Positions 2,204 to 63,981 of a stretch of 64,000 nt of DNA are shown piece by piece. The position numbers and the translations under genes are program-made. The notes under the pieces are model-generated. The model did no database searches and was not told where the DNA came from. It saw only the letters and a program-made list of their open reading frames with translations. Each line of letters starts with the position of its first letter. Position 1 is the first letter of the stretch. The DNA is taken from the sequence record MK774614.2, one strand, 5' to 3'.

Positions 2204-2653
2204 ATGATCATGAAACAAATCAGTTTTCCTGTGAAACCCGGACGGATCAATATCTTTCGACTGGGATACACCGACCCTGGGATGAGAGACGCCAACGCGT
2301 TTATTTTGATCGCCGGGGAAGAAGAGAAAGACGAACTTCTCCAAGTCCCAGATTGGGTATCGGATCAGTGGGACATTCATGAACCCGTAGATTACGAAGC
2401 ACAAAACTTTGCTGATCTATTTGATATCATGGAAGCGGATGAAGTTGGTGAACATGATCTGCGCGAGTCCATGGAAACCCTGCTGGATGATACTGACAAC
2501 CAACCGGTTTGTTATGAAATCAACGAAGAAGGATTTCAAGCCATCCTCGTGCTACCAGAAAGGCAATTCAGCGGACGGTTCCAAGAACACTGGGATCGGG
2601 TTGATGAAGAAGATGCGTTTGAAGATTTGTCCATTATTGCACGTCACGATTAA
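2204..2653 (+). CDS. Acidic hypothetical protein
   Basis: 149-aa ORF with AGGAG RBS. Confidence 0.75.
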   Translation: MIMKQISFPVKPGRINIFRLGYTDPGMRDANAFILIAGEEEKDELLQVPDWVSDQWDIHEPVDYEAQNFADLFDIMEADEVGEHDLRESMETLLDDTDNQPVCYEINEEGFQAILVLPERQFSGRFQEHWDRVDEEDAFEDLSIIARHD

Positions 2654-2673
2654 TTAACCATTAAGGAAGTGTT

Positions 2674-3051
2674 ATGACTGTAAAAGGTATCAAAGAAAAC
2701 CAAATCATCGTAGGAACTGTGAAGTCTGGTAAAGTGGGAGTGTTGCCTAGTAAGGTGATCATCTCCTCTTCTAAAGGCAGCGTGGAAGATCTGGGGGTCC
2801 AGCTGGATTGGATCACGCCACCGGAAATCATCGAAACTGAGAGTGTTAAAACCCCAGCACAGATGGTGAAGGCGATCCAAAAACACGCTCGATCTTTGGA
2901 GAAAGAAGCAGGTACTCGACTCCAATGTCTTTTGGACTCTTTGACTACCTCTTCTCGCCAACACTTCTACGATGACGGTACCGATGACAACTGCATCTCG
3001 ATCTGGATTTCCAAGAACACTCAATTGGATCTGGGTAAGTTTTGCGTCTAA
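2674..3051 (+). CDS. Hypothetical protein
   Basis: 125-aa ORF with AAGGA RBS. Confidence 0.7.
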   Translation: MTVKGIKENQIIVGTVKSGKVGVLPSKVIISSSKGSVEDLGVQLDWITPPEIIETESVKTPAQMVKAIQKHARSLEKEAGTRLQCLLDSLTTSSRQHFYDDGTDDNCISIWISKNTQLDLGKFCV

Positions 3052-3068: not shown

Positions 3069-3431
3069 ATGAATATTTTCGATATAGTAGAAGCGAAGAA
3101 GTCTAACATTAGCAATGAAGATTTTCAGAAGCTGTGGGACACTGTTACCAATAAACATGTCCGTGCTGTGTTGAAGGAAGTGTCCTGTAAACTGGGTGAT
3201 CGAGATCCGAACGGAAATGAATTTAGCAAAGCTAATCTTCAAAGCGCGCTAAAGAACATTTGTTGTTTCGAAAGTATCCGGTTTGAATCTTACAAGGAAA
3301 GTGCAGCTGTACTAGCTATGATCAAGGTCATCTATGAACAGGCACTGTATTTGAAAGATCCAGATGTGGTCTATAAAGAACTCGAAACTCATTTCGAGCA
3401 CTATTATAGTTTGTTGGACAAACCGTTCTAA
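3069..3431 (+). CDS. Hypothetical protein
   Basis: 120-aa ORF followed by a hairpin terminator. Confidence 0.7.
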   Translation: MNIFDIVEAKKSNISNEDFQKLWDTVTNKHVRAVLKEVSCKLGDRDPNGNEFSKANLQSALKNICCFESIRFESYKESAAVLAMIKVIYEQALYLKDPDVVYKELETHFEHYYSLLDKPF

Positions 3432-3440
3432 ATAACAACG

Positions 3441-3466
3441 ATGGATCTGGGGAAACCTGGATCCAT
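3441..3466 (+). terminator. Intrinsic terminator
   Basis: Imperfect atggatctgg/ctggatccat hairpin followed by a T-rich run. Confidence 0.6.
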
Positions 3467-3506
3467 TTTCTTTCTGTTTTATTTTAGTATAAATTAAAGA
3501 GGAACT

Positions 3507-3965
3507 ATGTTTAAATATCTATTTGGGAAAATGCGTCAAAATGATGAAACGGGTGAAGAAACGCATCGCGAAGACGCACTTGCAATTACCCGCCGTTGTG
3601 ATTCGTATCAGCATCGTGACATGGCACGTGATATTTCAATGATTCCGTTTAATGGCGGGTTTTGTGGTTCTGCATTAAATTTTGATAACGCCTATCTTCC
3701 AGGACAGTTTAACGGAGAGTCAGTTTCCTGTCGGGTTAAAACCGAAGGAGATGCAAAGAAGATTGAAGAGTTTGTTAAAGAAACAGATATCTTCGTTTGT
3801 AAGTTCGGTAAATCAGAATACCTGGTTGCGCTCTTTATTCCAAAAGGTAATACGGTTGCTGATCCCTACAATAAAGAGATCAAACCGAATGATTGGAAGA
3901 AAGTTTCTCCTGAAGAGTTTTGTGCGCTCTTTAAAGAAGTCTTTGATAATCCCTATTACATGTAA
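3507..3965 (+). CDS. Hypothetical protein
   Basis: 152-aa ORF with GAGGA RBS. Confidence 0.75.
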   Translation: MFKYLFGKMRQNDETGEETHREDALAITRRCDSYQHRDMARDISMIPFNGGFCGSALNFDNAYLPGQFNGESVSCRVKTEGDAKKIEEFVKETDIFVCKFGKSEYLVALFIPKGNTVADPYNKEIKPNDWKKVSPEEFCALFKEVFDNPYYM

Positions 3966-3968
3966 TAA

Positions 3969-3998
3969 AGCTAGAGAACCCCAAAGGGTTCTCTAGCT
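3969..3998. terminator. Terminator between convergent genes
   Basis: 13-bp stem agctagagaaccc-caaa-gggttctctagct; poly-T downstream. Confidence 0.75.
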
Positions 3999-4013
3999 CA
4001 ACATACTTTTTTT

Positions 4014-4694
4014 TTAAATTGTTGCTGGATAATAAACATCTAACGTTTGCAAAGTTAAATTAGGGGCTTTGAATTTTGCTGTTCCGATGGTTCTTGCTTG
4101 AATTGTTTTTGTTGCGAATCCTTCCACGTTAGGATTCACATCCTTGACCAATGTAGTTAATCCCACAGAGTGTTGACTATTATTGACAAGAACCTCCTCA
4201 GGGATCTCTATATCTAATTCTATCTCGTCCCAATAGATTTCCCCTAATGCTTTCCAGCAATCGTCTACAGTGTGCTTAGTGGGGTTTAATAAGAGCACAT
4301 ATTTGTTTTGATCATTGATGTGATAAAGTCCAAACGTATATGCCCCATTACCAATCCCTGCTTCAAACTCCACCAAGGTCATTGAAGGAACATCAATAAA
4401 ATGATCTTTATAAATTAATGGTAAATCGACCATCTTCAATTCTGCATCCGCGTAAAAGTATTCAGTGCGTCTTGATAGAAAACAAGCGATCAATTTTCCA
4501 TTGGGAAATAACGTCGGTGGTTCTATTTGAACATCTTCGTTTTTAAGGTCGTAATATTTGGCAATCGCTTCGTCGTATTTCTTCAGGCCTTTTTGAGCGA
4601 TCATCTTATCGGCAAGATCAGCTAAATACAGTTTTACCGATGAGAATAACGGATCTTTAATCCGCTTACTTCTAACAATCTTGTCAGTTATCAT
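4014..4694 (-). CDS. Hypothetical protein (lone minus-strand gene, possibly late/structural)
   Basis: 226-aa ORF with no competing plus-strand ORF; bounded by a hairpin and a divergent promoter. Confidence 0.7.
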   Translation of the reverse strand: MITDKIVRSKRIKDPLFSSVKLYLADLADKMIAQKGLKKYDEAIAKYYDLKNEDVQIEPPTLFPNGKLIACFLSRRTEYFYADAELKMVDLPLIYKDHFIDVPSMTLVEFEAGIGNGAYTFGLYHINDQNKYVLLLNPTKHTVDDCWKALGEIYWDEIELDIEIPEEVLVNNSQHSVGLTTLVKDVNPNVEGFATKTIQARTIGTAKFKAPNLTLQTLDVYYPATI

Positions 4695-7232: not shown

Positions 7233-7751
7233 ATGAATGACAGTCAATATATCAAAGGACTTTGGGAAGAGTCCCCTGAAATTGTCGAACAGGCTAAAAA
7301 ATCATTGAGTGAATTTATCGAGAGACTGGGTCCGCCAGTTGATCAAGATGAACTCTTTGGAAACTTCATTGATCCGGCTAAACGAAAATCTGGTCCAATT
7401 GTCTTTCAGGGAGTAAAACCTGATTTGGTTCGCAGCGTTGCCATGGAGTGTCATCATTCCGTGGACCCTGCATTTAATAATCTTGGTGCGCAACACTTGG
7501 GGATTGAAGCACCTATCGTAGTAACAGGCGGCAGTCAATTCCGGGGAAGGGGTCTTTTGTTCTCGGTGGTTGATAACACTTGTAATAAAGATGTGTTATT
7601 TACGCTACGCAAAGAGGGCCATAAACCGCTAGTCAACGTACAGCGTCACATAGATGAACAAAAATATTGGAACCCTGTAGAAAAACAGATCTCAAAAGCC
7701 CCATCCTGTTTTATCGATGACAAATACATTTACCGTAAAGGACGAAAGTAA
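7233..7751 (+). CDS. Hypothetical protein
   Basis: 172-aa ORF coupled to thyA. Confidence 0.7.
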   Translation: MNDSQYIKGLWEESPEIVEQAKKSLSEFIERLGPPVDQDELFGNFIDPAKRKSGPIVFQGVKPDLVRSVAMECHHSVDPAFNNLGAQHLGIEAPIVVTGGSQFRGRGLLFSVVDNTCNKDVLFTLRKEGHKPLVNVQRHIDEQKYWNPVEKQISKAPSCFIDDKYIYRKGRK

Positions 7752-8767
7752 TGGAACAACCTATTCGTAACACATTTGAAAACTGGTACATCGAGGCTCT
7801 CAAGAGTCTATTGGGCGGTGTGAATAAAGACGATCGAACAGGAACCGGAACAATCTCCACCACGTTCATGTCGCATAAGTATGACTTGCGAGATGGTTAC
7901 CCAACGATGTACAGCCGTTTTCTAAAGCCAGAAAACCCTGCTAAGGAAATGATCTGGATGTTGTCTGGATCTAAAAATGTAAAAGATCTGCAAGCACTAG
8001 GGGTTCCATTTTGGAATGCGTTTGCAGATGAGAGCGGTGACCTTGGTCCGATCTATGGATACCTGTGGCGTAACTGGCCTAATCCGGATGGGAGTGTAAC
8101 TGACCAGATTAAATACGTTCAGGAAGCACTTAAATCCAATCCTAGTTCGCGCCGGATGGTAGTTAGTTGCTGGAATCCATCCTTTATCCCCGATCCTAAG
8201 CGTCCTCCTAAGGAAAACTACAAGTTTGGACATTCTAGTCTGACAGCCTGTCATTATGCCTGGCAAGTGGTTTGTCAGCCAATGACGATTATGGAGCGTG
8301 TTCAACATGCGGTGACAAGTTTCTCTCTTCCGGATGAATTTGTCGATAACCCGATCAAATTGATCACCCATCCTAACGGGGATGTGATACTGGACCAAGC
8401 AAATATCCCACGTTATTTCTTGGATCTGAAATTTGATATGCGTAGCAATGATTTTGTTCTGGGCAATCCAGCTAACTGGGGAATGTACGCATTCCTAGCA
8501 GAGCTGCTTGCTTTTGAAAATAACATGGTGGCACGGTATCTGTGTTATGGCGGCATGGATGTCCATGTGTATCAAAATCATCTGCTGGGAGTACAACAAC
8601 AGCTTAATTACTTTGAAGCTAATAAAGAACATGTCTTAGCGCAGCGAACAGACATTATCTTTAATAAGGGGACGACGCTCGATAACGTTACTCCGGAGAG
8701 CTTTAAATTCATCGGATACGCAAGAGAAGTGGCGGGTCCTGCTATCAAATTCCCCATTGCAGTTTAA
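7751..8767 (+). CDS. thyA: Thymidylate synthase
   Basis: DRTGTGT, KEMIWMLSG, DLGPIYG, SRRMVVS, catalytic LTACH, MRSNDFVLGNPAN, DVHVYQNH. Confidence 0.95.
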   Translation: MEQPIRNTFENWYIEALKSLLGGVNKDDRTGTGTISTTFMSHKYDLRDGYPTMYSRFLKPENPAKEMIWMLSGSKNVKDLQALGVPFWNAFADESGDLGPIYGYLWRNWPNPDGSVTDQIKYVQEALKSNPSSRRMVVSCWNPSFIPDPKRPPKENYKFGHSSLTACHYAWQVVCQPMTIMERVQHAVTSFSLPDEFVDNPIKLITHPNGDVILDQANIPRYFLDLKFDMRSNDFVLGNPANWGMYAFLAELLAFENNMVARYLCYGGMDVHVYQNHLLGVQQQLNYFEANKEHVLAQRTDIIFNKGTTLDNVTPESFKFIGYAREVAGPAIKFPIAV

Positions 8768-51400: not shown

Positions 51401-53179
51401 AAGTGACCTTTGGTGGGACTTTTGGTCGAAGTGATCGTGCGATGGTGAGACGGACACGGGGCCAACTTCCTAACTACGAAGGGATTATTTCTGAAGCAGG
51501 GAAAGACTCTGGTAAAGTTGGCTTTATTTCCTATCTGACTTCTGATGCAAAGATTGTTGACTTAGGTGGAAACGTAGACACGTCTCTTCCAACCACTGAT
51601 GCAGGTCGACTTTCTGTTACATCAAACCTTCTTTATGGCTCAACACGGGATGACAGTAAACGGTAAGATGCCCTCTATATACATTGATGTCTATAGAGAA
51701 CTAATTGCCCATTCACTGGGAAACAAGTGAATGCATTAATCCTTAATTGCTGGGAAGTGCTCTGTGATGCTTACGCTAAAACGGAATAGGAAACTATAGA
51801 CGGAACAGTGTGAAAATGTAAGCGGAGAGACAGTCAGCAGCGGAGCACCTACGTACATTTGCGATAAATGGATAGGGTGAGCGTTCAACGACTAGGGGTG
51901 AAACTCCCCGTAGCTGGGACATGGAATGTTCCTACCAAACAGGATTACCTTACTGTGTTGCTGAAGAAGCAACAATACAGTTGGTTGAAATATAGTCTGC
52001 TCCTTATGGCGACATAAGGCGGGTGCCAGGTATCGCACCGGGTCTTAGGATAAGACTGGACAGAAGGCGTTGTTCTCGACCGTGCAGCTAAGTCAATGGA
52101 TGGCAACAGACTCCTATCAGGTTTCTCCACTTCGTACTTCTTATGACAGTGCAGTGGGATATCGTAACTTTGAACTTTATACCTCTGTTGCAAAACAAGA
52201 CGGAGTGGTGAAAGAAGTTACAGCAGATGGGATTATTGTTGAATACGTTGATGGAACAGAAGGGAAGTTTTTCTTAGGATATGAAATTGGAAAAGGTGCG
52301 GGTGAATATCACAAACACTTAAAAGTCACTGATGTAAAAGTAGGACAGAAAGTTCCCCAGGGGATGATTGTTGCGTGGGATAGTTGTTTCTATACCCGTG
52401 ATAGTTTAGATCCTACCCGTGTTCTGCTTAAGACTGGGACACTTTCTCGGATTGCCTTGATCGAAGACCAGTTTACCTTTGAAGACTCCATTGGGATTAC
52501 GCAGGAATATGCCAATAAGAACAGCACACCGTTCTTAAAGCAGAACCATTTCAGAGTTGAATACGCGCAAGTTGTAAAGATGTATTGTAAAGTAGGTGAT
52601 GAGGTAGAATACGACCAAGTCCTTGCTGATATCAAAGATCAAAGTGCTGCAATGTTCGATGATGAATTTAGCCCAATGGCAGGATTGGATCGACTGGGAA
52701 TCAAGCAGGTCAAAGCAAAACAAGCAGGTCGGATTGCCAAGATTGAAGTGTTGTATAATGGCGATTACGATGATGCGGAAGAGTCTGTGAAACAGTTGAT
52801 TAAACAGGCCGATGGTGTTCGCAGTAAAGCGGCTAAATACCGTAACCTGTATGCACCAGATGGGAACGTAGGTGGGAACACCTCCATCGGTAAATCCAAG
52901 GTCTATCCGAATACCTGTACTGTTAATATCTACATCGAATCAAGTTTGGTGACCACCGTAGCGGATAAGTTCGTGGTGGGGAACCAGATGAAAGGGACAG
53001 TTGGCTTTATTTATCCCAGCCAAATCACGACACCGGATGGTCGCAAAGTAGACATTACTTTCTCATTGAAGTCGCTCCTTAACCGAATGGTATTGAGTCT
53101 TCGTGATAAATTGGTGGCTAACGAAACTAACCACGTGTATACGTCCAGAATGATTTCGAAATATGGGAGATATGAGTAA
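48427..53179 (+). CDS. Virion RNA polymerase beta subunit (phiKZ gp178-like); exons 48427-51664 and 52068-53179
   Basis: Splicing gives 1449 aa with junction DDSKR-S-LFSTVQLSQ, in register with E. coli beta DDANRALMGANMQRQ; DKFVVGNQMKG, FEDSI, DSGKVG. Confidence 0.88.
51665..52067 (+). mobile_element. Group I intron (IA2-like, ORF-less, 403 nt) in vRNAP beta
   Basis: P AAUUGCUGGGAA (51745), Q GUCAGCAG (51833), R GUUCAACGACUA (51883), S GAAAUAUAGUC (51987); P3 UAAUCCU/AGGAUUA; U before and G at the splice sites. Confidence 0.9.
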
Positions 53180-54132
53180 TGGCTAATAGCGAGAAGGATG
53201 TTTCTGTTATCAATGGGATTCAGACCACCCTCTCGCAACTTTCTCTGTACAAAGGCCGTGTAGACGGCCTTTTCGGAAAAGGTTGTCGAGATGCTGTGAT
53301 CCACATGGTAAATGTGGTTTATCCCGGCAAGGTGATGAAGTACCCTGAAAATAATTATGAAGCAAAAAGCGTTTACACGTTTCTTCAAACTGTATTGGCA
53401 CAAGTGGGTCTGTACACCATTGCGATTGATGGGAAATGGGGAAACGGAAGTGCAACTGCATTTAATGGGCTAGTGGATCAGTACCGCACTGCATCAACAA
53501 CCCAGGGTGGAGACCAACCAGTTCACTTAACGGAAGCGCAGTTTAAAGCGATGTTGCCATCTGCTAACTGGGATAAGGTCCCGGTTTATCTTTCGGCTAT
53601 TAACGAAGCAATGGAAGTGTTTGATATCACCACCCCGCTTCGTAAAGCTCACTTTATGGCACAAGTTCTTCACGAAACTGCGAATCTGAAATACAGTGAA
53701 GAGATTGCGAGTGGGAAAGCATATGAGGGTCGTGCTGATTTAGGTAATACTAAACCAGGTGATGGCCCCCTCTTTAAAGGTCGTGGTTTGCTTCAGTTGA
53801 CGGGTCGGGATAATTATCTGAAATGCCAAACTTATCTGCGTCAACGTTTAAACGATCCCCGTTTTGACATTACCTCTGATGTAACCAAAGCCAGTCAGTT
53901 GTCAACCAATCCGCTTTATGCGGCCCTTGCCTCTGGGTATTTTTGGCATTCCATTAAGCCAAAACTCAATGCCACAGCAGACAAGGACGACATTTACTGG
54001 TGTTCTGTTTATGTCAATGGCTATGCTAAACAAACTCATCCCTATTACCCTGATAGAGATAAAGAACCGAATCACATGAAAGAACGTGTTCAAATGCTCT
54101 CTGTCACAAAGAAAGCGTTTGGTCTGATTTAA
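53179..54132 (+). CDS. Modular endolysin: peptidoglycan-binding repeats plus GH19 catalytic domain
   Basis: Two PG-binding-like repeats (VDGLFGKG, IDGKWGNG); HFMAQVLHET; YEGRADLGN; FKGRGLLQLTGRDNY. Confidence 0.88.
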   Translation: MANSEKDVSVINGIQTTLSQLSLYKGRVDGLFGKGCRDAVIHMVNVVYPGKVMKYPENNYEAKSVYTFLQTVLAQVGLYTIAIDGKWGNGSATAFNGLVDQYRTASTTQGGDQPVHLTEAQFKAMLPSANWDKVPVYLSAINEAMEVFDITTPLRKAHFMAQVLHETANLKYSEEIASGKAYEGRADLGNTKPGDGPLFKGRGLLQLTGRDNYLKCQTYLRQRLNDPRFDITSDVTKASQLSTNPLYAALASGYFWHSIKPKLNATADKDDIYWCSVYVNGYAKQTHPYYPDRDKEPNHMKERVQMLSVTKKAFGLI

Positions 54133-55832: not shown

Positions 55833-56584
55833 TGATTGACACTAATAAACTCAGTAAGAACGTAGGGCTGGCAAAAGCCGCCCTACGCAAAATGCCGGAT
55901 AATTCTGTCATTGCGCTAAAGAAAGTCAAAGTGTGCTTTCCTAAGCGATTCGAACAAAGTGGCTTAGCAGATATTGCAGATTCAGTAGAAACTATTTTAA
56001 TGGTCGGTCTGATCCATGAGAATAGTTATTGTACCTTGGCAGGGATGTGTCGGGTGGTGATGAAGCCCGGTGATATTTATGAAGAAAATATCAAAGGGGA
56101 TCGTTACTATGTATTGGAGTTTGAACCGGGGGACGTGGTCATCGAAAACTTGACCATTCCTCAAGACTCCAACATCGGCTATTCTTATTACTTGGAACTG
56201 GTTAAGTTCGCTCGTATTCCTTGGTACGCTACTGCTGAAACAATTCTCAGTGTCTTTGACGAATCTGGGTTTTATACCGGTAAATCAACGGGGATGAGTA
56301 ATCAGGCAATCCGTGTTCTTTACGCCTTAACAGGCCGTGATCCAAAGAACATTGATATTCCGTTTAGATACTCTCCTGATCTTAACAATCCAAACGTCCA
56401 TGCTCGTATTATCGGGATTAATAACCCGGGTCAACTTCTTAACAGCACCTTCTCTCGCCTGACCTCTGGGTATATGTCTGATAACATCATTTCAGGTCTA
56501 CTCAATCCTGATCAGAAAGTCACTGTGTTGGAAGAAGTTATCCGTGGTCTTCCGAGTGAAGTGGGAGATAACAGTAATGTCTGA
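55832..56584 (+). CDS. Conserved jumbo-phage protein (phiKZ gp176-like by synteny)
   Basis: 250-aa coupled ORF upstream of the protease. Confidence 0.6.
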   Translation: MIDTNKLSKNVGLAKAALRKMPDNSVIALKKVKVCFPKRFEQSGLADIADSVETILMVGLIHENSYCTLAGMCRVVMKPGDIYEENIKGDRYYVLEFEPGDVVIENLTIPQDSNIGYSYYLELVKFARIPWYATAETILSVFDESGFYTGKSTGMSNQAIRVLYALTGRDPKNIDIPFRYSPDLNNPNVHARIIGINNPGQLLNSTFSRLTSGYMSDNIISGLLNPDQKVTVLEEVIRGLPSEVGDNSNV

Positions 56585-57431
56585 ACTCAGTTTTGGTAAT
56601 ATCATTTTGGCACACAGTGGCAAGAAGGGGGTGTTAAAACCCAATGAAGCTGGCGTGTACCATCTGAATGCGGGGGGTTTTAATATCCCCAATGCGGGCG
56701 GGATCCAATATCCGTTTAACGATTACCTGCGTGAACAAATGGAAGCCACCAGCGATTTGAATCGCCGGGTTTCCATGGGGTATTGTAAAATGGAAGTGGA
56801 ACACCCGCAACCCTTTGTCTATGTGGAAGAAAACGGGGTTCGGTATCGTAAACAAATGTCGACCTTGTTGGAGTGGATTAACCGTTTGCGCAGTTATGAT
56901 CCCGCTAACATTTGCGGTCTGATCAGCAAGATCTATTTTACGCCTGAGAATCCTCGTGATCTGACTAAGCCGGTTTACAACTATATTGATTGTGAACCGT
57001 TTGGTCCTCGTGGGGCTGAATTTAAAGAGTCTTTGGATAATCCCCGTCATAATACAGCGGTGAGTATCCGGACTCAAATCAGCCCTTATGTGGATGGCAG
57101 CAATCGCAAAAATGTGGAGTATTGGACTGGGTATGACTGGGTTGGTGAACCTGGGATGATCCATGCTAATAAACACATGACGGCAGGGTGTGAATCCATG
57201 TTGGATGAATACTCTCTTCGTGGTGACAATACTCAGAAGTTCAAAGCAGCTGATGTCATTGAACAACTCGGTAACTGCTTGGCTAATGCCGCCAATGACA
57301 CTGAAGCACTTCAACGTGTGGGTGGAATGGAAGCATTGAATGACATGCGTCAACTCCACGATCGAATTAAAGCCAATTACGTAAAAGGCTCGACTGTGAA
57401 ACTGGGCGTGCAATTTAGTTCCATTTTCTAA
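56577..57431 (+). CDS. Prohead maturation protease (phiKZ gp175 / T4 gp21-like)
   Basis: EVEHP (His), AVSIRT (Ser), YDWVGEPG (Asp). Confidence 0.75.
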   Translation: MSELSFGNIILAHSGKKGVLKPNEAGVYHLNAGGFNIPNAGGIQYPFNDYLREQMEATSDLNRRVSMGYCKMEVEHPQPFVYVEENGVRYRKQMSTLLEWINRLRSYDPANICGLISKIYFTPENPRDLTKPVYNYIDCEPFGPRGAEFKESLDNPRHNTAVSIRTQISPYVDGSNRKNVEYWTGYDWVGEPGMIHANKHMTAGCESMLDEYSLRGDNTQKFKAADVIEQLGNCLANAANDTEALQRVGGMEALNDMRQLHDRIKANYVKGSTVKLGVQFSSIF

Positions 57432-58080: not shown

Positions 58081-58105
58081 CTATAAATTTTCAGACAGAT
58101 ATAAT
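58081..58105 (+). promoter_or_regulatory. Putative phage early promoter (variant)
   Basis: ctataaattttcagacagatataat. Confidence 0.55.
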
Positions 58106-58178: not shown

Positions 58179-58203
58179 CTATAATTTTTCAGGTAGATAT
58201 TAC
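58179..58203 (+). promoter_or_regulatory. Putative phage early promoter
   Basis: ctataatttttcaggtagatattac. Confidence 0.72.
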
Positions 58204-59435: not shown

Positions 59436-59455
59436 GGTTTTCAAACCTATATTAC
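59436..59455 (+). promoter_or_regulatory. Putative phage early promoter
   Basis: gttttcaaacctatattac with exact TATATTAC core. Confidence 0.75.
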
Positions 59456-59536
59456 CAAAGTGTAATCTACTTTAAGGTATTAGCGGACTTTGAGTTAGAA
59501 CCCTATTAATTAACAAATGAACAAAGGACTTTCTGT

Positions 59537-60070
59537 ATGAAAACATTACTTCTGGCTTTTCTGATGATGCTGGTCACTGGTGCGGTAAAGGCAACCACCT
59601 TGGACAACATTGGCTGGGTCCCGACAAAACAAGCTGAAAATGGCAAGGTGATGAAAATCACCAACATGGGTCTGCGGGGCGGAATGATCAGTGTGGGGTG
59701 TGAGAAAGAAGGAGATCCGTTGAAGATCGCCTTTACTCGGGCCAACAACTCTCCCTCTGATATGTTCATTGTTGAACTGATGAACAAGGAGGGGAATGAT
59801 AAAGGTAACTATGTCCGGGCCTATGGGCTTAAAAGCATGTCTCCTATCGCAACACTGAAACAGATCGAACTGAGCACTCAAGGTTTTGTAGTAAGTTTCT
59901 ATGAAGAAGGGGCGCTTGATCAGTTTTATCAATACCGTGCTAAAAAGGAAGGGGTCAAAATTCCTGTTCCTATTGGTGCTGAAAAGTTTGCAGGTCACGA
60001 AGAAGTAAAAGCCTATACTGATCAGATTCGTGAAGTCTGTACTGATCACTTGGGTGCACCTAACCTGTAA
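59537..60070 (+). CDS. Exported two-Cys protein, copy 1
   Basis: Signal peptide ...GAVKA; Cys in VGCEK and EVCTD. Confidence 0.8.
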   Translation: MKTLLLAFLMMLVTGAVKATTLDNIGWVPTKQAENGKVMKITNMGLRGGMISVGCEKEGDPLKIAFTRANNSPSDMFIVELMNKEGNDKGNYVRAYGLKSMSPIATLKQIELSTQGFVVSFYEEGALDQFYQYRAKKEGVKIPVPIGAEKFAGHEEVKAYTDQIREVCTDHLGAPNL

Positions 60071-60078
60071 ATCCTGAT

Positions 60079-60110
60079 CCTAACACCGTCCCGGGAGTGG
60101 CGGTGTTAGG
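60079..60110 (+). terminator. Intrinsic terminator
   Basis: cctaacaccg/cggtgttagg stem plus gtttt. Confidence 0.7.
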
Positions 60111-60138
60111 GTTTTATTTAGTAGTAGAAATTTAAGTT

Positions 60139-60163
60139 CCATAATTTTTCAGTCTAATATAAC
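60139..60163 (+). promoter_or_regulatory. Putative phage early promoter (variant)
   Basis: ccataatttttcagtctaatataac. Confidence 0.55.
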
Positions 60164-60227
60164 CGTATTGACTGAATAGGCCTTGCGGCGTTTGTGTTTT
60201 TAACCCTGTTGAAAATTGGAGTTTACT

Positions 60228-60866
60228 ATGAAAACCATTAAACACTGTATCGAAATGTTCATCACGTTCTTTCTGGGTTGGTTGTTTTGCTTCTCGGCGC
60301 AAGCAGCCAGCTATGACATGGAACCTGCGCTGGATTACACGCTAAAATCTGCTGTAAGCTATCAGGTTAACACCAGTCAAACCCCAACCGGGCATCATAA
60401 GTTTGAAGTGGTGTTGGAAGACGTGGATGGCGAAAAACAGTCTTTTGCATTTTATTGTGTGAAAGGCAGTCGAACTTTGGTGGCGCGTTATAACGCTAAA
60501 GATGTCCATGGCGAGTACAGTAACTGGGCCAGCGACATTGCTATTCAATGGTATCCTGACAGTGCGCTCAAAGCACGTGAGCTGTTCATGGAACAAGACA
60601 AGGACATCCTGATCGTAGGACGAACCAATACCAACTTGCGTCAAACCTTTGCGGATTTGCGTAATCACGGTGTGGGTCGTTTTGCTTTTGTTGCTTATAA
60701 CAATGGCATGAATGGTCAGATCACAACCAACGTGATCTCCTTTACCATGTCGCCCAAAATGGCCGATGAGATGTCTAAGAAGATGATGGCATTGGATTAC
60801 GGTCAAGCGTGTGATGAAGCCACTGGTCCTAATGCAGTGACCAGTGACGTTGGTCAGGTTCATTAA
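60228..60866 (+). CDS. Exported two-Cys protein, copy 2
   Basis: GGAG RBS; signal peptide ...FSAQA; Cys in FYCVK and QACDE. Confidence 0.8.
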   Translation: MKTIKHCIEMFITFFLGWLFCFSAQAASYDMEPALDYTLKSAVSYQVNTSQTPTGHHKFEVVLEDVDGEKQSFAFYCVKGSRTLVARYNAKDVHGEYSNWASDIAIQWYPDSALKARELFMEQDKDILIVGRTNTNLRQTFADLRNHGVGRFAFVAYNNGMNGQITTNVISFTMSPKMADEMSKKMMALDYGQACDEATGPNAVTSDVGQVH

Positions 60867-60874
60867 ACCCGTCT

Positions 60875-60904
60875 GTTCCTTACTCCTAAGCAGGAGTAAG
60901 GAAC
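60875..60904 (+). terminator. Intrinsic terminator
   Basis: 13-bp stem gttccttactcct/aggagtaaggaac. Confidence 0.7.
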
Positions 60905-60923
60905 GTTATTTTAGGAGTACATC

Positions 60924-61472
60924 ATGAAACTGTTTTTATTTGTTTTGGCAATGTTTTCAATCGGAATGGTGAAAGCCTCTGATACTGCTTTGGTTGAAAT
61001 CCAAGTAGATAAGCTTCAAGGCGGAACGTCCCTGATGATCGGGATGGAAGCGGAAGATCGTTCTATCCAAGCGCTGGGCTTTAGTTGCATCAAAGCGACT
61101 GAGCTTTATGACAATCAGTATGCGCTGACGTATGTCCTGAAAGATCTGAACAATCAACCGGTGAAAGCAGGGATCGACAGCTTTAAAGTCTATCGGGTTG
61201 ATACTGGTGAAAAGACCTTTGGATTGACCCCCGAGAAAAAGGTGTTGTTGTTTGACAGTAAAGTCGATACCAGTCTTCGCAACTTTACTCAGCGACTGAC
61301 CTATCAACCCAAAGAGAGTTTTATCTATTTTGAACTTCACAATTCAACAACAGATGAAACTATCTATACCAAACGACTCTCCAGCAAATCCATTGCGATG
61401 CAATCGCTGAAATACGATCTGTCAGATTGCGCTGATGTTCTGCCCAGTGTATCCGATTGGGGTCCACATTAA
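60924..61472 (+). CDS. Exported two-Cys protein, copy 3
   Basis: AGGAG RBS; signal peptide ...GMVKA; Cys in FSCIK and SDCAD. Confidence 0.8.
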   Translation: MKLFLFVLAMFSIGMVKASDTALVEIQVDKLQGGTSLMIGMEAEDRSIQALGFSCIKATELYDNQYALTYVLKDLNNQPVKAGIDSFKVYRVDTGEKTFGLTPEKKVLLFDSKVDTSLRNFTQRLTYQPKESFIYFELHNSTTDETIYTKRLSSKSIAMQSLKYDLSDCADVLPSVSDWGPH

Positions 61473-61535
61473 GAAATCCACTAGGAGATATGGGCTGTTC
61501 TCCTAATTTATTGTTATCTGTTAGGAGTAACTACC

Positions 61536-61697
61536 ATGAGTTCACATGTTAAAGTCGCCCTTGTTTGGGTGGGGATTATTTACATTTGCTTGGCTATTCG
61601 TCTGGTTCCGGATTCAACTCACTGGGTAAACGATCAACTGGTGCTTCCACATTGGACATCTGCACCGATTGTTCAATACGTGATCGAACACTTGTAG
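61536..61697 (+). CDS. Small membrane protein (53 aa)
   Basis: AGGAG RBS; MSSHVKVALVWVGIIYICLAIRL...; not in the ORF track. Confidence 0.6.
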   Translation: MSSHVKVALVWVGIIYICLAIRLVPDSTHWVNDQLVLPHWTSAPIVQYVIEHL

Positions 61698-61706
61698 GAG
61701 AATACA

Positions 61707-61931
61707 GTGCGTGTTGATCGTCGTACAAGGCGGTATTTGATTTTGATTGTCAAGTACCGTCTTGGATTAATATCCAAGCAAAGAAAACTGGTTGAGACAC
61801 TTCGTTTAACAATTGTACCAACTAAGGTAACGCCTATTTGGTATTACCTGGTTCGAGAGATTGTTGATGGACATCGGGATAAGTTAAATTATTATAACGC
61901 TGTTAAGTATAGTTCTGTTACTCACTTTTAG
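61707..61931 (+). CDS. Small basic hypothetical protein
   Basis: AGGAG RBS, GTG start, 74 aa. Confidence 0.55.
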   Translation: MRVDRRTRRYLILIVKYRLGLISKQRKLVETLRLTIVPTKVTPIWYYLVREIVDGHRDKLNYYNAVKYSSVTHF

Positions 61932-61949
61932 ATAAAGAAGGATTTTGTT

Positions 61950-62612
61950 ATGAAGAAAGTAATCGCAGCCTGGGTTGTTGTTATCTCTTTGTTGGGCGGT
62001 GTTGTTTATGCCACCAATGCACATCGTCAAGAAACGGTAGACACACTGGTTACAAAAGTGGATCTTTCCGAGCAAGCAAAAATGCAATGGGAAGAATCTC
62101 GAACTCAACTGCTCGGTGCACCGATTACGGGATTGGACATTGACTCCCCTGTCGTTCGGTTTAACTATCCAGATCAAATGGGGTTGATCCTGAACATCCA
62201 AAATAAGCATTCGGATATTCGGGGGGCACTGAGCTGCGATGCACGAACGGGGACGTACGATTATGGTTATGAACACGGGACATTGGAAGGAAGTGATGTT
62301 CCCACTGATTTTGCCATTATCGTTTATAAAGAAGGGACGGATATCATTTATGAAAATGACCTCAGACGTCTCCCAATCTTCTCCAGTTCGCGCGGAGATA
62401 CCAATCTTAAGGAAGCCCTGGATTCTATTAAGAAATTGCCTGACGGCGATCTGGTGAGCTTTGTGGTAGAACACACAGGTAGCGATTACCTGACAAGTAC
62501 AGTTGGATGGGGACCGACATTTACTGTTAAAGAGTTTAAACAGGTGTTAAAGAAAGTCAACTTCGCTCCTTGCGAAGAAGTCGAACTTGTTTCTCCTCCT
62601 ACTGTGCTTTGA
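61950..62612 (+). CDS. Exported two-Cys protein, copy 4
   Basis: Signal peptide ...GVVYA; Cys in LSCDA and APCEE. Confidence 0.8.
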   Translation: MKKVIAAWVVVISLLGGVVYATNAHRQETVDTLVTKVDLSEQAKMQWEESRTQLLGAPITGLDIDSPVVRFNYPDQMGLILNIQNKHSDIRGALSCDARTGTYDYGYEHGTLEGSDVPTDFAIIVYKEGTDIIYENDLRRLPIFSSSRGDTNLKEALDSIKKLPDGDLVSFVVEHTGSDYLTSTVGWGPTFTVKEFKQVLKKVNFAPCEEVELVSPPTVL

Positions 62613-62618
62613 TCACGG

Positions 62619-62645
62619 GTTACCCTAGGTTATTCCTAGGGTAAC
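62619..62645 (+). terminator. Terminator hairpin
   Basis: gttaccctagg/cctagggtaac. Confidence 0.65.
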
Positions 62646-62674
62646 TTCATCCTATATTTTGTTTTGTTTAAGCT

Positions 62675-62699
62675 CTATAAATTTTGAGTCTAATATAAT
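62675..62699 (+). promoter_or_regulatory. Putative phage early promoter (variant)
   Basis: ctataaattttgagtctaatataat. Confidence 0.6.
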
Positions 62700-62729: not shown

Positions 62730-63458
62730 ATGCAACACTTCAATTCTGAAATCAGCTTAGTAAACACTTATATTAATAAGTTTGATAAGTTGTTTGAAGG
62801 TCTGGTTAAGCGGGACTTGTTGGTTTACTGTACCGAAAGTATTTCCATGAACGATCCTGCGCATCACTTAGGGCATGTGTACGATGTTTGCCAACAAGGT
62901 AAAGCCATTGCGCACTCGTTGGATTTTCATGAAAGTGACATGAAGCTGGTTTATCTGGCCTGCCTATTTCATGATCTGGGGTGTCGATTTGAGCGTGAAT
63001 TCCATCATCTGATAGGGTATGGATTGACCTATGATCTCTTGCACCGTTTTTGCCGTGGTGAGTTTTCTGAACAAGAAACATTGATCATTGCAACTGCGGT
63101 CCTTGAGCATCGTTCTTCTAATAAGAAGAAACCGTCCAACCGTATTTCTGAAGTGGTCAGTGTAGCGGATTCCGGTCGTCCTGAAATCAGCACTTACATC
63201 AAACGGTGTATTCAATTTCGTTTGCATCGTGGGGATTATCGAGACGGTGAAGATACATCCAAGTTCTTTGGTGATGTCAAGAATCACTTGCGTGAGAAAT
63301 TTGGATCAACAGGCTACCACTGGAATAGTTACCCTGATTTGGGTATGACGTTCTTTTACGAAGAGTGGAAGAACTTCAGTTATTTCCTACAAGAAGAGAA
63401 CGAGAGCGAACTTGACGCGCTGGTCGTAGCACAGTTTAATAAAGTGCTGAGGGGTTAA
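62730..63458 (+). CDS. HD-domain phosphohydrolase
   Basis: HHLGHV, ACLFHDLG, HH--G, EHR, VADS metal-ligand pattern. Confidence 0.85.
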   Translation: MQHFNSEISLVNTYINKFDKLFEGLVKRDLLVYCTESISMNDPAHHLGHVYDVCQQGKAIAHSLDFHESDMKLVYLACLFHDLGCRFEREFHHLIGYGLTYDLLHRFCRGEFSEQETLIIATAVLEHRSSNKKKPSNRISEVVSVADSGRPEISTYIKRCIQFRLHRGDYRDGEDTSKFFGDVKNHLREKFGSTGYHWNSYPDLGMTFFYEEWKNFSYFLQEENESELDALVVAQFNKVLRG

Positions 63459-63459
63459 C

Positions 63460-63915
63460 ATGCTCCCGACAATCATTAGCTATCTTTGGGTCTTGGCAAT
63501 CCTGTTTGTGGGATTGCTTATTTTTGTTGGACTGTGGAAGTTCCTGTGGTTTAATCTGAAAGAGTGCGATTATGCATTCCGTTGGCATGGACTGTGGCGA
63601 AACAGTTTTTACGTAGCAGTGGGGAAGGAAAATACCAATAACTGTTACGGGATTAACATTCGTTATCACTCTAATGCTCGCGTATTAAAGATCAGACGCA
63701 TCTTGGATAAAAGTTTTGCATTGGACATTCCTATTGGGATTGACTTCATTACTTTTGCCCAGTACGTTAAAACACTGGATGTCAACAAATACCCCTCTAA
63801 TCGAATCCTGTTAGGGATTGTTGATGAAAGTCAATTGATCCCATTGGGTTTGAACGAGAAAGAGATGAGTTCATTTCATCAATTTAAAGAACAATTGCTA
63901 AAGGTCGCTTTTTAA
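63460..63915 (+). CDS. N-terminally membrane-anchored protein
   Basis: N-terminal TM helix; GAGG RBS. Confidence 0.7.
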   Translation: MLPTIISYLWVLAILFVGLLIFVGLWKFLWFNLKECDYAFRWHGLWRNSFYVAVGKENTNNCYGINIRYHSNARVLKIRRILDKSFALDIPIGIDFITFAQYVKTLDVNKYPSNRILLGIVDESQLIPLGLNEKEMSSFHQFKEQLLKVAF

Positions 63916-63947: not shown

Positions 63948-63981
63948 AGAGAGTAGCATCCCAATTGGGATGCTACTCTCT
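63948..63981. terminator. Terminator hairpin
   Basis: 16-bp perfect stem agagagtagcatccca/tgggatgctactctct. Confidence 0.75.

Follow-up and report, generated by a model that had tools for sequence, protein, structure and literature searches.

The stretch of DNA analysed here, 64,000 nucleotides (nt) long and referred to as the window, is 100% identical to Aeromonas phage CF8 (record MK774614.2; genus Chaoshanvirus; genome 238,150 bp) and represents the final 64 kb of that record, i.e. a window position equals the record position minus 174,150. On its plus strand lies an array of four genes with the GenBank label "hypothetical protein", CF8_0237, CF8_0238, CF8_0239, and CF8_0242, which we call A, B, C, and D, respectively. 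A first-pass annotation, made from the letters of the window, had described them as a tandem family of early, exported, disulfide-type proteins. The four open reading frames (ORFs) were found where it had placed them, and every peptide that it had quoted is present, i.e. ISVGC, FAFYC, LGFSC, and GALSC at the first Cys, EVC, QAC, SDC, and APC at the second, and IATLKQ, NTNLRQ, DTSLRN, and DTNLKE between the two. The four genes are as follows.

59537..60070, plus strand: gene A, CF8_0237, 177 amino acids (aa); leader at about 1-19, ending between VKA and TT; mature Cys55 and Cys168
60228..60866, plus strand: gene B, CF8_0238, 212 aa; leader at about 1-26, ending between AQA and AS; mature Cys77 and Cys195
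60924..61472, plus strand: gene C, CF8_0239, 182 aa; leader at about 1-18, ending between VKA and SD; mature Cys55 and Cys169
61950..62612, plus strand: gene D, CF8_0242, 220 aa; hydrophobic helix at about 2-24; mature Cys96 and Cys208

The leaders of A, B, and C have the classical n-h-c layout with -3/-1 sites of the signal peptidase I type, and that of B contains two additional Cys. The N-terminus of D is a 22-residue uncharged segment with a possible site between VYA and TN. The Sec-type signal peptide that had been assigned to all four proteins is therefore safe for A to C with their classical sites, but ambiguous for D, which may be cleaved, anchored, or lipidated. A crude leader test was passed by only 6 of the 70 annotated proteins of the window, and four of these six are the array proteins.

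The spacing between the two mature Cys is 113 residues in A, 118 in B, 114 in C, and 112 in D. That each protein has exactly two mature Cys, as the first-pass annotation had noticed, holds for A to D and also for 87 of 87 homologues (43 proteins encoded at the array loci and 44 database homologues). All 43 locus proteins combine a hydrophobic leader with two mature Cys that are 99-129 residues apart, and the second Cys of the family is located 2-32 residues from the C-terminus. The invariance of the pair indicates an oxidising compartment, and the two Cys are most likely joined in a disulfide, by which the C-terminal helix would be tied to the sheet. In D, the motif FSSxRGD-TNLKE is conserved.

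The D orthologues differ in the way in which they would be held at the membrane. A lipobox (LVGC, LTAC, or LVAC) directly follows the leader in the D orthologues of six of the 12 phages compared and in most metagenomic members. D of most Aeromonas phages has neither a lipobox nor a good cleavage site, which suggests a signal anchor, and none of the four CF8 proteins has a lipobox. D is thus the predicted membrane-tethered member, while A, B, and the proteins encoded between B and D, i.e. in the "mid-slot" that C occupies in CF8, have classical signal peptidase I sites and are predicted to be soluble in the periplasm. Taken together, the leaders, the lipobox variants, and the invariant Cys pair argue strongly for export of the array proteins to the periplasm, the destination that had been proposed for them.

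Direct BLAST among A to D yielded only one pair, B and C, with an E value of 0.02, and profiles were therefore needed to address the relationship of the four proteins. The profile-profile comparisons with hhalign gave the following probabilities, E values, and aligned columns.

B versus D: 99.2%, E 2.2e-19, 155 columns
C versus merged B+D profile: 95.8%, E 7.4e-9, 145 columns
A versus merged B+D profile: 78%, E 1.8e-5, 81 columns
A versus D: 56%, E 1.1e-4, 28 columns
A versus B: 50%, E 1.6e-4, 86 columns

Negative controls with neighbouring proteins that do not belong to the family never exceeded 3% probability and never gave an E value better than 0.015. The alignment of B and D brings both Cys and the NL(R/K) motif into register, and in that of C, both Cys and DTSLRN fall into the family columns. 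The alignments of A are always collinear, with its first Cys on the first Cys of the family and IATLKQ on NTNLRQ. The correspondence of the four motifs between the Cys, which had been proposed by eye, is thus reproduced by the profile-profile alignments. If the family is defined by leader, Cys pair, array position, and a match to the B/D-core profile, the first three were found for all four proteins and the fourth for B, C, and D, with A at 50-78% and E values of 2e-5 to 2e-4. Single linkage of BLAST matches joined B-type and D-type proteins, while the A-type proteins formed a separate group with one member per phage. The mid-slot proteins, including C of CF8, are fast-evolving singletons, and C has no BLAST orthologue in another phage record.

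B, C, and D are clearly homologous by these profile scores, and A is a probable distant member of the family, as judged from its profile score together with the matching order of secondary-structure elements (see below). The view that the four are highly diverged paralogues is therefore strong for B, C, and D (99.2% and 95.8%) and moderate for A (78%, E 2e-5, shared element order).

The AlphaFold2 model of D is confident, with a predicted local distance difference test (pLDDT) score of 91.0 and a predicted template modelling (pTM) score of 0.78. The model of A is usable (pLDDT 74.6, pTM 0.68); the leader regions have low confidence. A and D share the order of elements, i.e. five beta-strands, the third of which ends with the first Cys, a helix, two strands, a C-terminal helix, and the second Cys. 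The model of A has an extra helix between the two later strands in comparison with D, and the offset between corresponding elements is 35-53 residues, around 40 for most of them. The two models were derived from independent alignments. Unrelated predicted folds had been named beforehand as an outcome that would speak against a family; the models of A and D agree one to one in the order of their elements. The models also bear out the placement of the first Cys after a beta-strand and of the second near the C-terminus, the first being at a strand end and the second just past the C-terminal helix.

A Foldseek search of BFVD with the D model retrieved the D orthologues first, followed by proteins of B-type length and source (E 3e-7 to 6e-6), the mid-slot protein A0A514TWM5 of phage D6 (E 5e-4; identity confirmed by cluster look-up), and a 151-aa protein of the Vibrio jumbo phage VP4B, V9LZ94 (E 9e-4). 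A further match, A0A4Y5TM53 (182 aa, E 3e-3), has a length that fits C of CF8, although its identity was not confirmed. Chains of the phiKZ neck (9xps), NlpE, MotY, and minor pseudopilins were considered as relatives and rejected as noise (E 0.02-0.2, TM-score 0.1-0.33).

An AT-rich phage motif, the two variants of which share TTT(C/G)A-N5-ATAT(A/T)A, has 10 instances in the window, all on the plus strand and all intergenic. Its strict pattern matched seven times versus 0.28 expected matches, and no shuffle reached a value of seven. In and around the array, the following signals were identified.

59438..59467, plus strand: promoter-like motif, variant 2, upstream of A (motif scan)
60076..60113, plus strand: intrinsic terminator hairpin after A, with a T-run behind it, -24.1 kcal/mol, z -4.3
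60139..60162 (match at 60146), plus strand: promoter-like motif, variant 1, upstream of B (motif scan; conserved in relatives)
60181..60188, plus strand: invariant CCTTGCGG core of a conserved leader block between the B promoter and gene B (nine-phage alignment)
60874..60905, plus strand: intrinsic terminator hairpin after B, -21.6 kcal/mol, z -6.3, 18 nt before the start of C
61482..61505, plus strand: weak hairpin after C, not a convincing terminator, -8.8 kcal/mol, z -1.1
62617..62647, plus strand: terminator-like hairpin after D, -20.6 kcal/mol, z -5.4
62675..62698 (match at 62682), plus strand: promoter-like motif upstream of an HD-domain gene, 3′ boundary of the array (motif scan)

The hairpin after D had been missed by a consensus scan because its T-run is not adjacent to the stem. 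The first-pass annotation had stated that promoters and terminators punctuate the array. This applies to the motifs before A and B and to the terminators after A, B, and D, but the motif scan found no instance before C or D and the hairpin after C is not significant.

The same motif also heads operons with the genes for thymidylate synthase, dihydrofolate reductase, thymidine kinase, and GroEL, and none of the 10 instances heads structural genes. In nearly all of the 12 phages, related AT-rich elements precede the A orthologue, the second gene of the array, and the HD gene. For jumbo phages that encode RNA polymerases, detectable AT-rich motifs have turned out to be early promoters of the virion RNA polymerase wherever this was tested, and the early class is recognized by a conserved AT-rich motif that lies upstream of an operon with its centre near -10 (review PMC7598289). 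Such a motif precedes A and B, and it is shared with the nucleotide-metabolism and chaperonin operons; it is therefore a reasonable inference that A and B are expressed early. The early timing that had been ascribed to the array as a whole thus extends to these two genes, whereas C and D are without the motif. The papers searched yielded no transcriptome of CF8 or its relatives. ZPAH34, a close relative of CF8, encodes chimallin and multisubunit RNA polymerases (PMC10321303), and CF8 is therefore placed among the nucleus-forming jumbo phages, the early genes of which are transcribed by a virion RNA polymerase.

The promoter upstream of B is part of a non-coding block (60139-60200) whose nucleotide sequence is conserved in nine phages of different genera and which consists of the AT-rich promoter-like element, around 10 nt, and then CCTTGCGG. 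The proteins encoded downstream of the block are only around 20% identical, and in Survivor and pEt-SU a different paralogue type is found behind it. The block has no RNA fold better than those of shuffled sequences (z 0.33) and matched no Rfam family. The conserved promoter-leader element could become a tool to map the early regulon of the clade. Elsewhere in the window, two tandem copies of the motif, 98 bp apart, are located upstream of CF8_0235 (58083-58102 and 58181-58200), which encodes a conserved protein of 141 aa that is 67% identical in ZPAH34.

Two conserved genes follow the array.

62730..63458, plus strand: CF8_0243, HD-domain phosphohydrolase (Pfam HD, E 5e-6), conserved neighbour and synteny anchor
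63460..63915, plus strand: CF8_0244, 151 aa; N-terminal transmembrane segment; as a neighbour conserved in 11 of 12 phages

Orthologues of A, B, and D were identified by tblastn in 19 records of Aeromonas jumbo phages, and orthologues of D additionally in OBP (Pseudomonas), AH04 (Erwinia), Kc263 (Kosakonia), Survivor (Pantoea), pEt-SU (Edwardsiella), N1M2 (Klebsiella), Serratia phages, and SXP01 (Shewanella). In all 12 loci compared, the array occupies one and the same place, i.e. a conserved gene for a protein of ~200 aa is followed by 3-5 ORFs of 160-245 aa and then by the HD phosphohydrolase gene. In 11 of the 12, the gene behind the HD gene encodes a small protein with an N-terminal transmembrane segment, and the tail tube and sheath genes come next, on the opposite strand, wherever the DNA extends that far (seven loci). 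The A and D orthologues are retained in 12 of 12 phages and the B orthologue in 10, in a fixed order. The same gene context was found for a divergent metagenomic D-type protein, and the array order recurs in metagenomic contigs. By these comparisons, the paralogues can be regarded as ancient, individually conserved orthologous groups with a fixed order in at least six genera, and not as a recent expansion in CF8.

An exhaustive HMMER scan of 1.84 billion representative proteins with D retrieved only 24 clusters; those with an identified source all come from jumbo phages, and no bacterial homologues were found among them. The family is therefore small and restricted to the clade. Word-seeded protein searches with A or D alone retrieved close relatives only. 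The HD gene is kept across chimallin-encoding jumbo phages, and in SPN3US, RAY, and Goslar it is present with no array upstream of it. On this distribution, the family appears specific to one clade of chimallin-encoding phages that comprises the OBP-like and the Aeromonas jumbo phages.

Single proteins with a leader and two Cys also occur near the HD gene of VP4B and Goslar, both of which are without the array. They were considered as candidate members and rejected, as they have no profile signal to the family. The VP4B protein (151 aa, 3919-4374 in its locus) matches V9LZ94 of BFVD in length and source, and the Goslar protein, gp154, is encoded at 7587-8108 in its locus, close to the HD gene of a phage that has no array.

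Between CF8 and ZPAH34, B and D are 43-45% identical, compared to around 65% for the HD protein and other neighbours, and by this measure the evolution of B and D is faster than that of the genes around them. The content of the mid-slot differs between phages.

None of the family libraries, structure libraries, or papers examined describes these proteins. Searches of Pfam, PHROGs, NCBIfam, and PADLOC with A to D gave nothing above noise. A scan of the libraries with all 25 members of the D alignment yielded single-member matches only, mostly to lipoprotein-signal models. Two matches were rejected, i.e. a SodC match on A (15 bits versus a cut-off of 250), taken as a leader-region match, and the Pfam family Phage_lipoprotein on one member of the A3 alignment (E 0.099), taken as a signal-region match. 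In a sequence-profile search of PDB, the B and D profiles had no match at E<=10, and what the A profile matched was noise. The first-pass annotation had not recognized the family, and indeed it has no relatives in Pfam, PHROGs, NCBIfam, PADLOC, or the PDB sequence and fold searches. The array is new in its fold, in its multi-paralogue tandem organization, and in being confined to a single clade of jumbo phages. Exported phage proteins with an action on the envelope are, as a general kind, known already.

No invariant residues of a catalytic type (His, Asp, or Ser) were found within any of the subfamily alignments. This, the fast evolution of B and D, the variable mid-slot, the predicted export with the Cys pair, and the early-type promoters together point to non-enzymatic binding at the envelope. 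We tentatively favour the reading that the array encodes non-enzymatic periplasmic binding proteins that are made early and serve, most plausibly, superinfection exclusion or envelope protection, although we would give it somewhat less than an even chance. Superinfection exclusion had been among the candidate roles of the first-pass annotation, together with receptor masking and envelope-stress control.

Under the favoured reading, A and B would each be transcribed from an AT-rich promoter of their own that is read early by the virion RNA polymerase, while C and D would depend on read-through or on an unrecognized promoter. The leader would take each protein across the inner membrane, and folding in the periplasm would produce a compact domain of a beta-meander plus helices, with a disulfide between the Cys pair. 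A, B, and the mid-slot members (C in CF8) would be released as soluble periplasmic proteins. D would stay tethered, by a lipid in the phages of enterobacteria, Pseudomonas, and Shewanella, and probably by an uncleaved leader in most Aeromonas phages. Soon after infection, the proteins would bind components of the host envelope from the periplasmic side, and the most plausible purpose would be that the infected cell is closed to more phage, by superinfection exclusion or by blocking of the receptor or entry site, or that its envelope is protected.

Early phage proteins that reside in the envelope or periplasm and stop superinfection are known from T4, i.e. Sp and Imm. Sp, also called Spackle (gp61.3), is an inhibitor of the tail lysozyme that carries a signal peptide and a disulfide. 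The array proteins differ from it in several respects. No match to Spackle was found in Pfam or PHROGs or among the listed PDB matches by profile or fold, the array models are beta-rich two-layer domains of around 150 residues whereas Spackle is small and helical, and the array is kept even where the endolysin is of another catalytic type.

The Llp protein of phage T5 is described as an early lipoprotein that binds FhuA and blocks the phage's own receptor from the periplasmic side. Llp and Cor-type proteins are phage-encoded, early, exported, lipid-anchored, and periplasm-facing, and they exclude further infection through binding to a protein of the host envelope; the array proteins would resemble them in these respects, D having a lipobox in six of the 12 phages. 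The differences are that neither libraries nor fold searches detected a relation in sequence or fold to Llp or Cor, that Llp is a single protein of around 60 residues compared to the 3-5 paralogues of 160-245 residues in the array, and that most array members are predicted to be soluble and D of CF8 has no lipobox. Llp also has a disulfide. Neither a Spackle nor an Llp entry is among the listed PDB matches, by profile or by fold.

Several observations weigh against the favoured reading. All 12 phages keep A and D, and 10 of them keep B, in a fixed order; this suggests cooperating, non-redundant components, a pattern that would look more like a conserved multi-component machine than like interchangeable exclusion factors. 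C and D lack the motif that speaks for early expression of A and B. The profile scores of A (50-78%) are below threshold, and the leaders were called by a hand-made rule and not by SignalP or LipoP. In addition, the Foldseek search of PDB with the A and D models gave no significant match (best E values 0.02-0.15, TM-scores 0.14-0.33).

The same anatomy, i.e. export, disulfide, and early-type promoters, would also be expected of a host-takeover or counter-defence module. Its proteins could bind and neutralize periplasmic or membrane proteins of the host, such as proteases, peptidoglycan hydrolases, envelope-stress sensors, and envelope-located components of abortive infection or defence, or they could form a D-anchored heteromeric complex that stabilizes the envelope of the swelling cell. 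The fixed order of A, B, mid-slot, and D and the presence of A and D in all 12 phages fit such cooperating components, and the fast divergence fits an arms race with host proteins. The bacterial periplasmic lysozyme inhibitors Ivy, PliC/MliC, and PliG are likewise small exported or lipid-anchored, beta-rich disulfide proteins with soluble and lipoprotein paralogues. They are, however, absent among the Foldseek and profile matches of the array, for which no bacterial homologues were found in the 24 clusters, and the array has no similarity to Ivy, to MliC- or PliC-type inhibitors, or to anything in PDB. A PADLOC scan was also without a match. We consider a host-takeover module rather unlikely, yet a serious competitor of exclusion or envelope protection.

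The pattern of retention would also be compatible with a conserved multi-component periplasmic apparatus with a new fold. In such an apparatus, the tethered D would seed the assembly of a hetero-oligomer from soluble A, soluble B, and host-adapting mid-slot subunits, which would be installed in the envelope within minutes after infection to re-seal or re-model the entry site and the envelope. We regard this as a quite unlikely possibility; if it were true, the array would be an envelope-takeover machine of a kind not described in any phage.

A role in the timing or execution of lysis would make the array proteins either antiholin-like sensors of the periplasm or spanin-like proteins of an unusual type, D being the lipoprotein partner. 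Beside the endolysin gene of CF8, neither a holin nor a spanin gene is recognizable, and this is why we leave a small probability to this explanation. D is a lipoprotein by its lipobox in six of the 12 phages, membrane proteins flank D, and the array proteins would resemble Rz/Rz1-type spanins in being periplasmic and Cys-containing, with one lipoprotein-anchored and one membrane-anchored partner. Possible lysis inhibition has been reported for phiKZ, the spanins of which, gp141 and gp141.1, are an alpha-helical coiled-coil i-spanin and a small o-spanin lipoprotein of 120 codons, encoded by overlapping genes beside the endolysin gene (PMC12894885). In contrast, the array proteins are much larger (177-235 aa), have no coiled coil, are globular and beta-rich in the models, and D of Aeromonas phages has no lipobox. 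Their genes are separate, neither embedded in one another nor adjoining the endolysin gene, which lies ~5.4 kb upstream, and the array thus differs from two-component spanins, in which the i-spanin combines an N-terminal transmembrane domain with a periplasmic coiled coil and the o-spanin gene is embedded in that of the i-spanin or directly behind it, usually beside the endolysin gene (PMC12894885). Early-type promoters would also be unexpected for lysis effectors, and we judge a lysis function to be improbable.

The first-pass annotation had further raised the idea of a Spackle-like inhibitor of the phage's own GH19 domains. The proteins would bind GH19-type domains, either in the virion lysin CF8_0224, in the endolysin CF8_0229, or in both, and thereby block puncture by superinfecting sibling phages and lysis from without. 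In favour of the idea are the two CF8 proteins that are annotated with chitinase-like (GH19) domains, the likeness to T4 Spackle of proteins that are predicted to be periplasmic and of the disulfide type, and the slower lysis reported for phiKZ at high multiplicity (PMC12894885). The endolysin CF8_0229 (53179-54132) consists of an N-terminal peptidoglycan-binding domain and a widespread GH19-type catalytic part, and among the 996 records with matches, only 6 span 80% or more of its length. The array is present in AerS_266 and pEt-SU, but their endolysins share only the N-terminal peptidoglycan-binding part with CF8_0229; the AerS_266 endolysin is annotated as a lytic transglycosylase, and the GH19-type C-terminal part of CF8 is replaced there. 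From these alignments, the catalytic domain of the endolysin appears to have been swapped within the clade. In this comparison of endolysins, the presence of the array is thus independent of their catalytic type, which weakens the idea of a GH19-specific inhibitor. Furthermore, neither the sequence nor the fold searches matched any solved structure, and we hold inhibition of the phage's own lysins to be highly improbable.

The proposal that the proteins are not exported, i.e. that the hydrophobic N-termini are internal and the proteins are cytoplasmic or virion (e.g. neck) components, can practically be dismissed: the three best, non-significant PDB fold matches of the D model are indeed phiKZ neck chains of 9xps of similar length (E 0.02-0.15), but their TM-scores are 0.13-0.14 and their Foldseek probabilities 0.08-0.16, no profile matched any PDB sequence, the lipoboxes, -3/-1 sites, and invariant Cys pair are hard to explain in the cytoplasm, and the low model confidence of the leader regions is as expected of signal peptides.

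For nucleus-forming jumbo phages, work on the cytoplasm has been intense, with the early vesicle, the chimallin shell, and selective import as its subjects, and their effects on the envelope are scarcely known. The array proteins are candidates for superinfection exclusion or envelope protection in phages whose use against Aeromonas, Klebsiella, Erwinia, Edwardsiella, and Pseudomonas is under consideration. The analysis also corrects misleading labels. The A-type and B-type members of Kc263 (2407-3021 and 3115-3738 in its locus) are annotated as "adhesin" and "putative exopolygalacturonase", respectively, and no search supports either annotation.

Two further ORFs are annotated between C and D.

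61536..61697, plus strand: CF8_0240, small ORF of 53 aa with one hydrophobic segment (single-pass), directly upstream of D
61707..61931, plus strand: CF8_0241, ORF of 74 aa with a GTG start, very basic (GenBank annotation; coding doubtful)

CF8_0240 has the motif VLPHW(T/S)xAPI in common with ORF83 of AhC3_1, and other Aeromonas phages have ORFs of 44-85 aa with a transmembrane segment at the same position upstream of D. For CF8_0241, no counterpart was recognized in the other loci compared, and it may not be coding. Proteins of the CF8_0244 type, around 150 aa in length and often with two Cys, are encoded 3′ of the HD gene in all of the 12 phages except AhC3_1, for the locus of which none is listed, and CF8_0244 could be functionally part of the array.

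The record closes with a hairpin (63948-63981), a perfect palindrome of 15 bp, that is terminator-like on both strands. It lies between the plus-strand array and HD operon and the position at which relatives have the tail tube and sheath genes on the opposite strand. In a different operon of the window, CF8_0174 (1847-2200) encodes an exported-looking protein of 117 aa with two Cys and a leader that ends between AKA and EP, and this operon is headed by an instance of the array's promoter motif at 1363. Lastly, CF8_0233 (56577-57431), annotated as hypothetical, is a clear member of Peptidase_S80, the prohead protease family of jumbo phages (Pfam E 1.6e-65).

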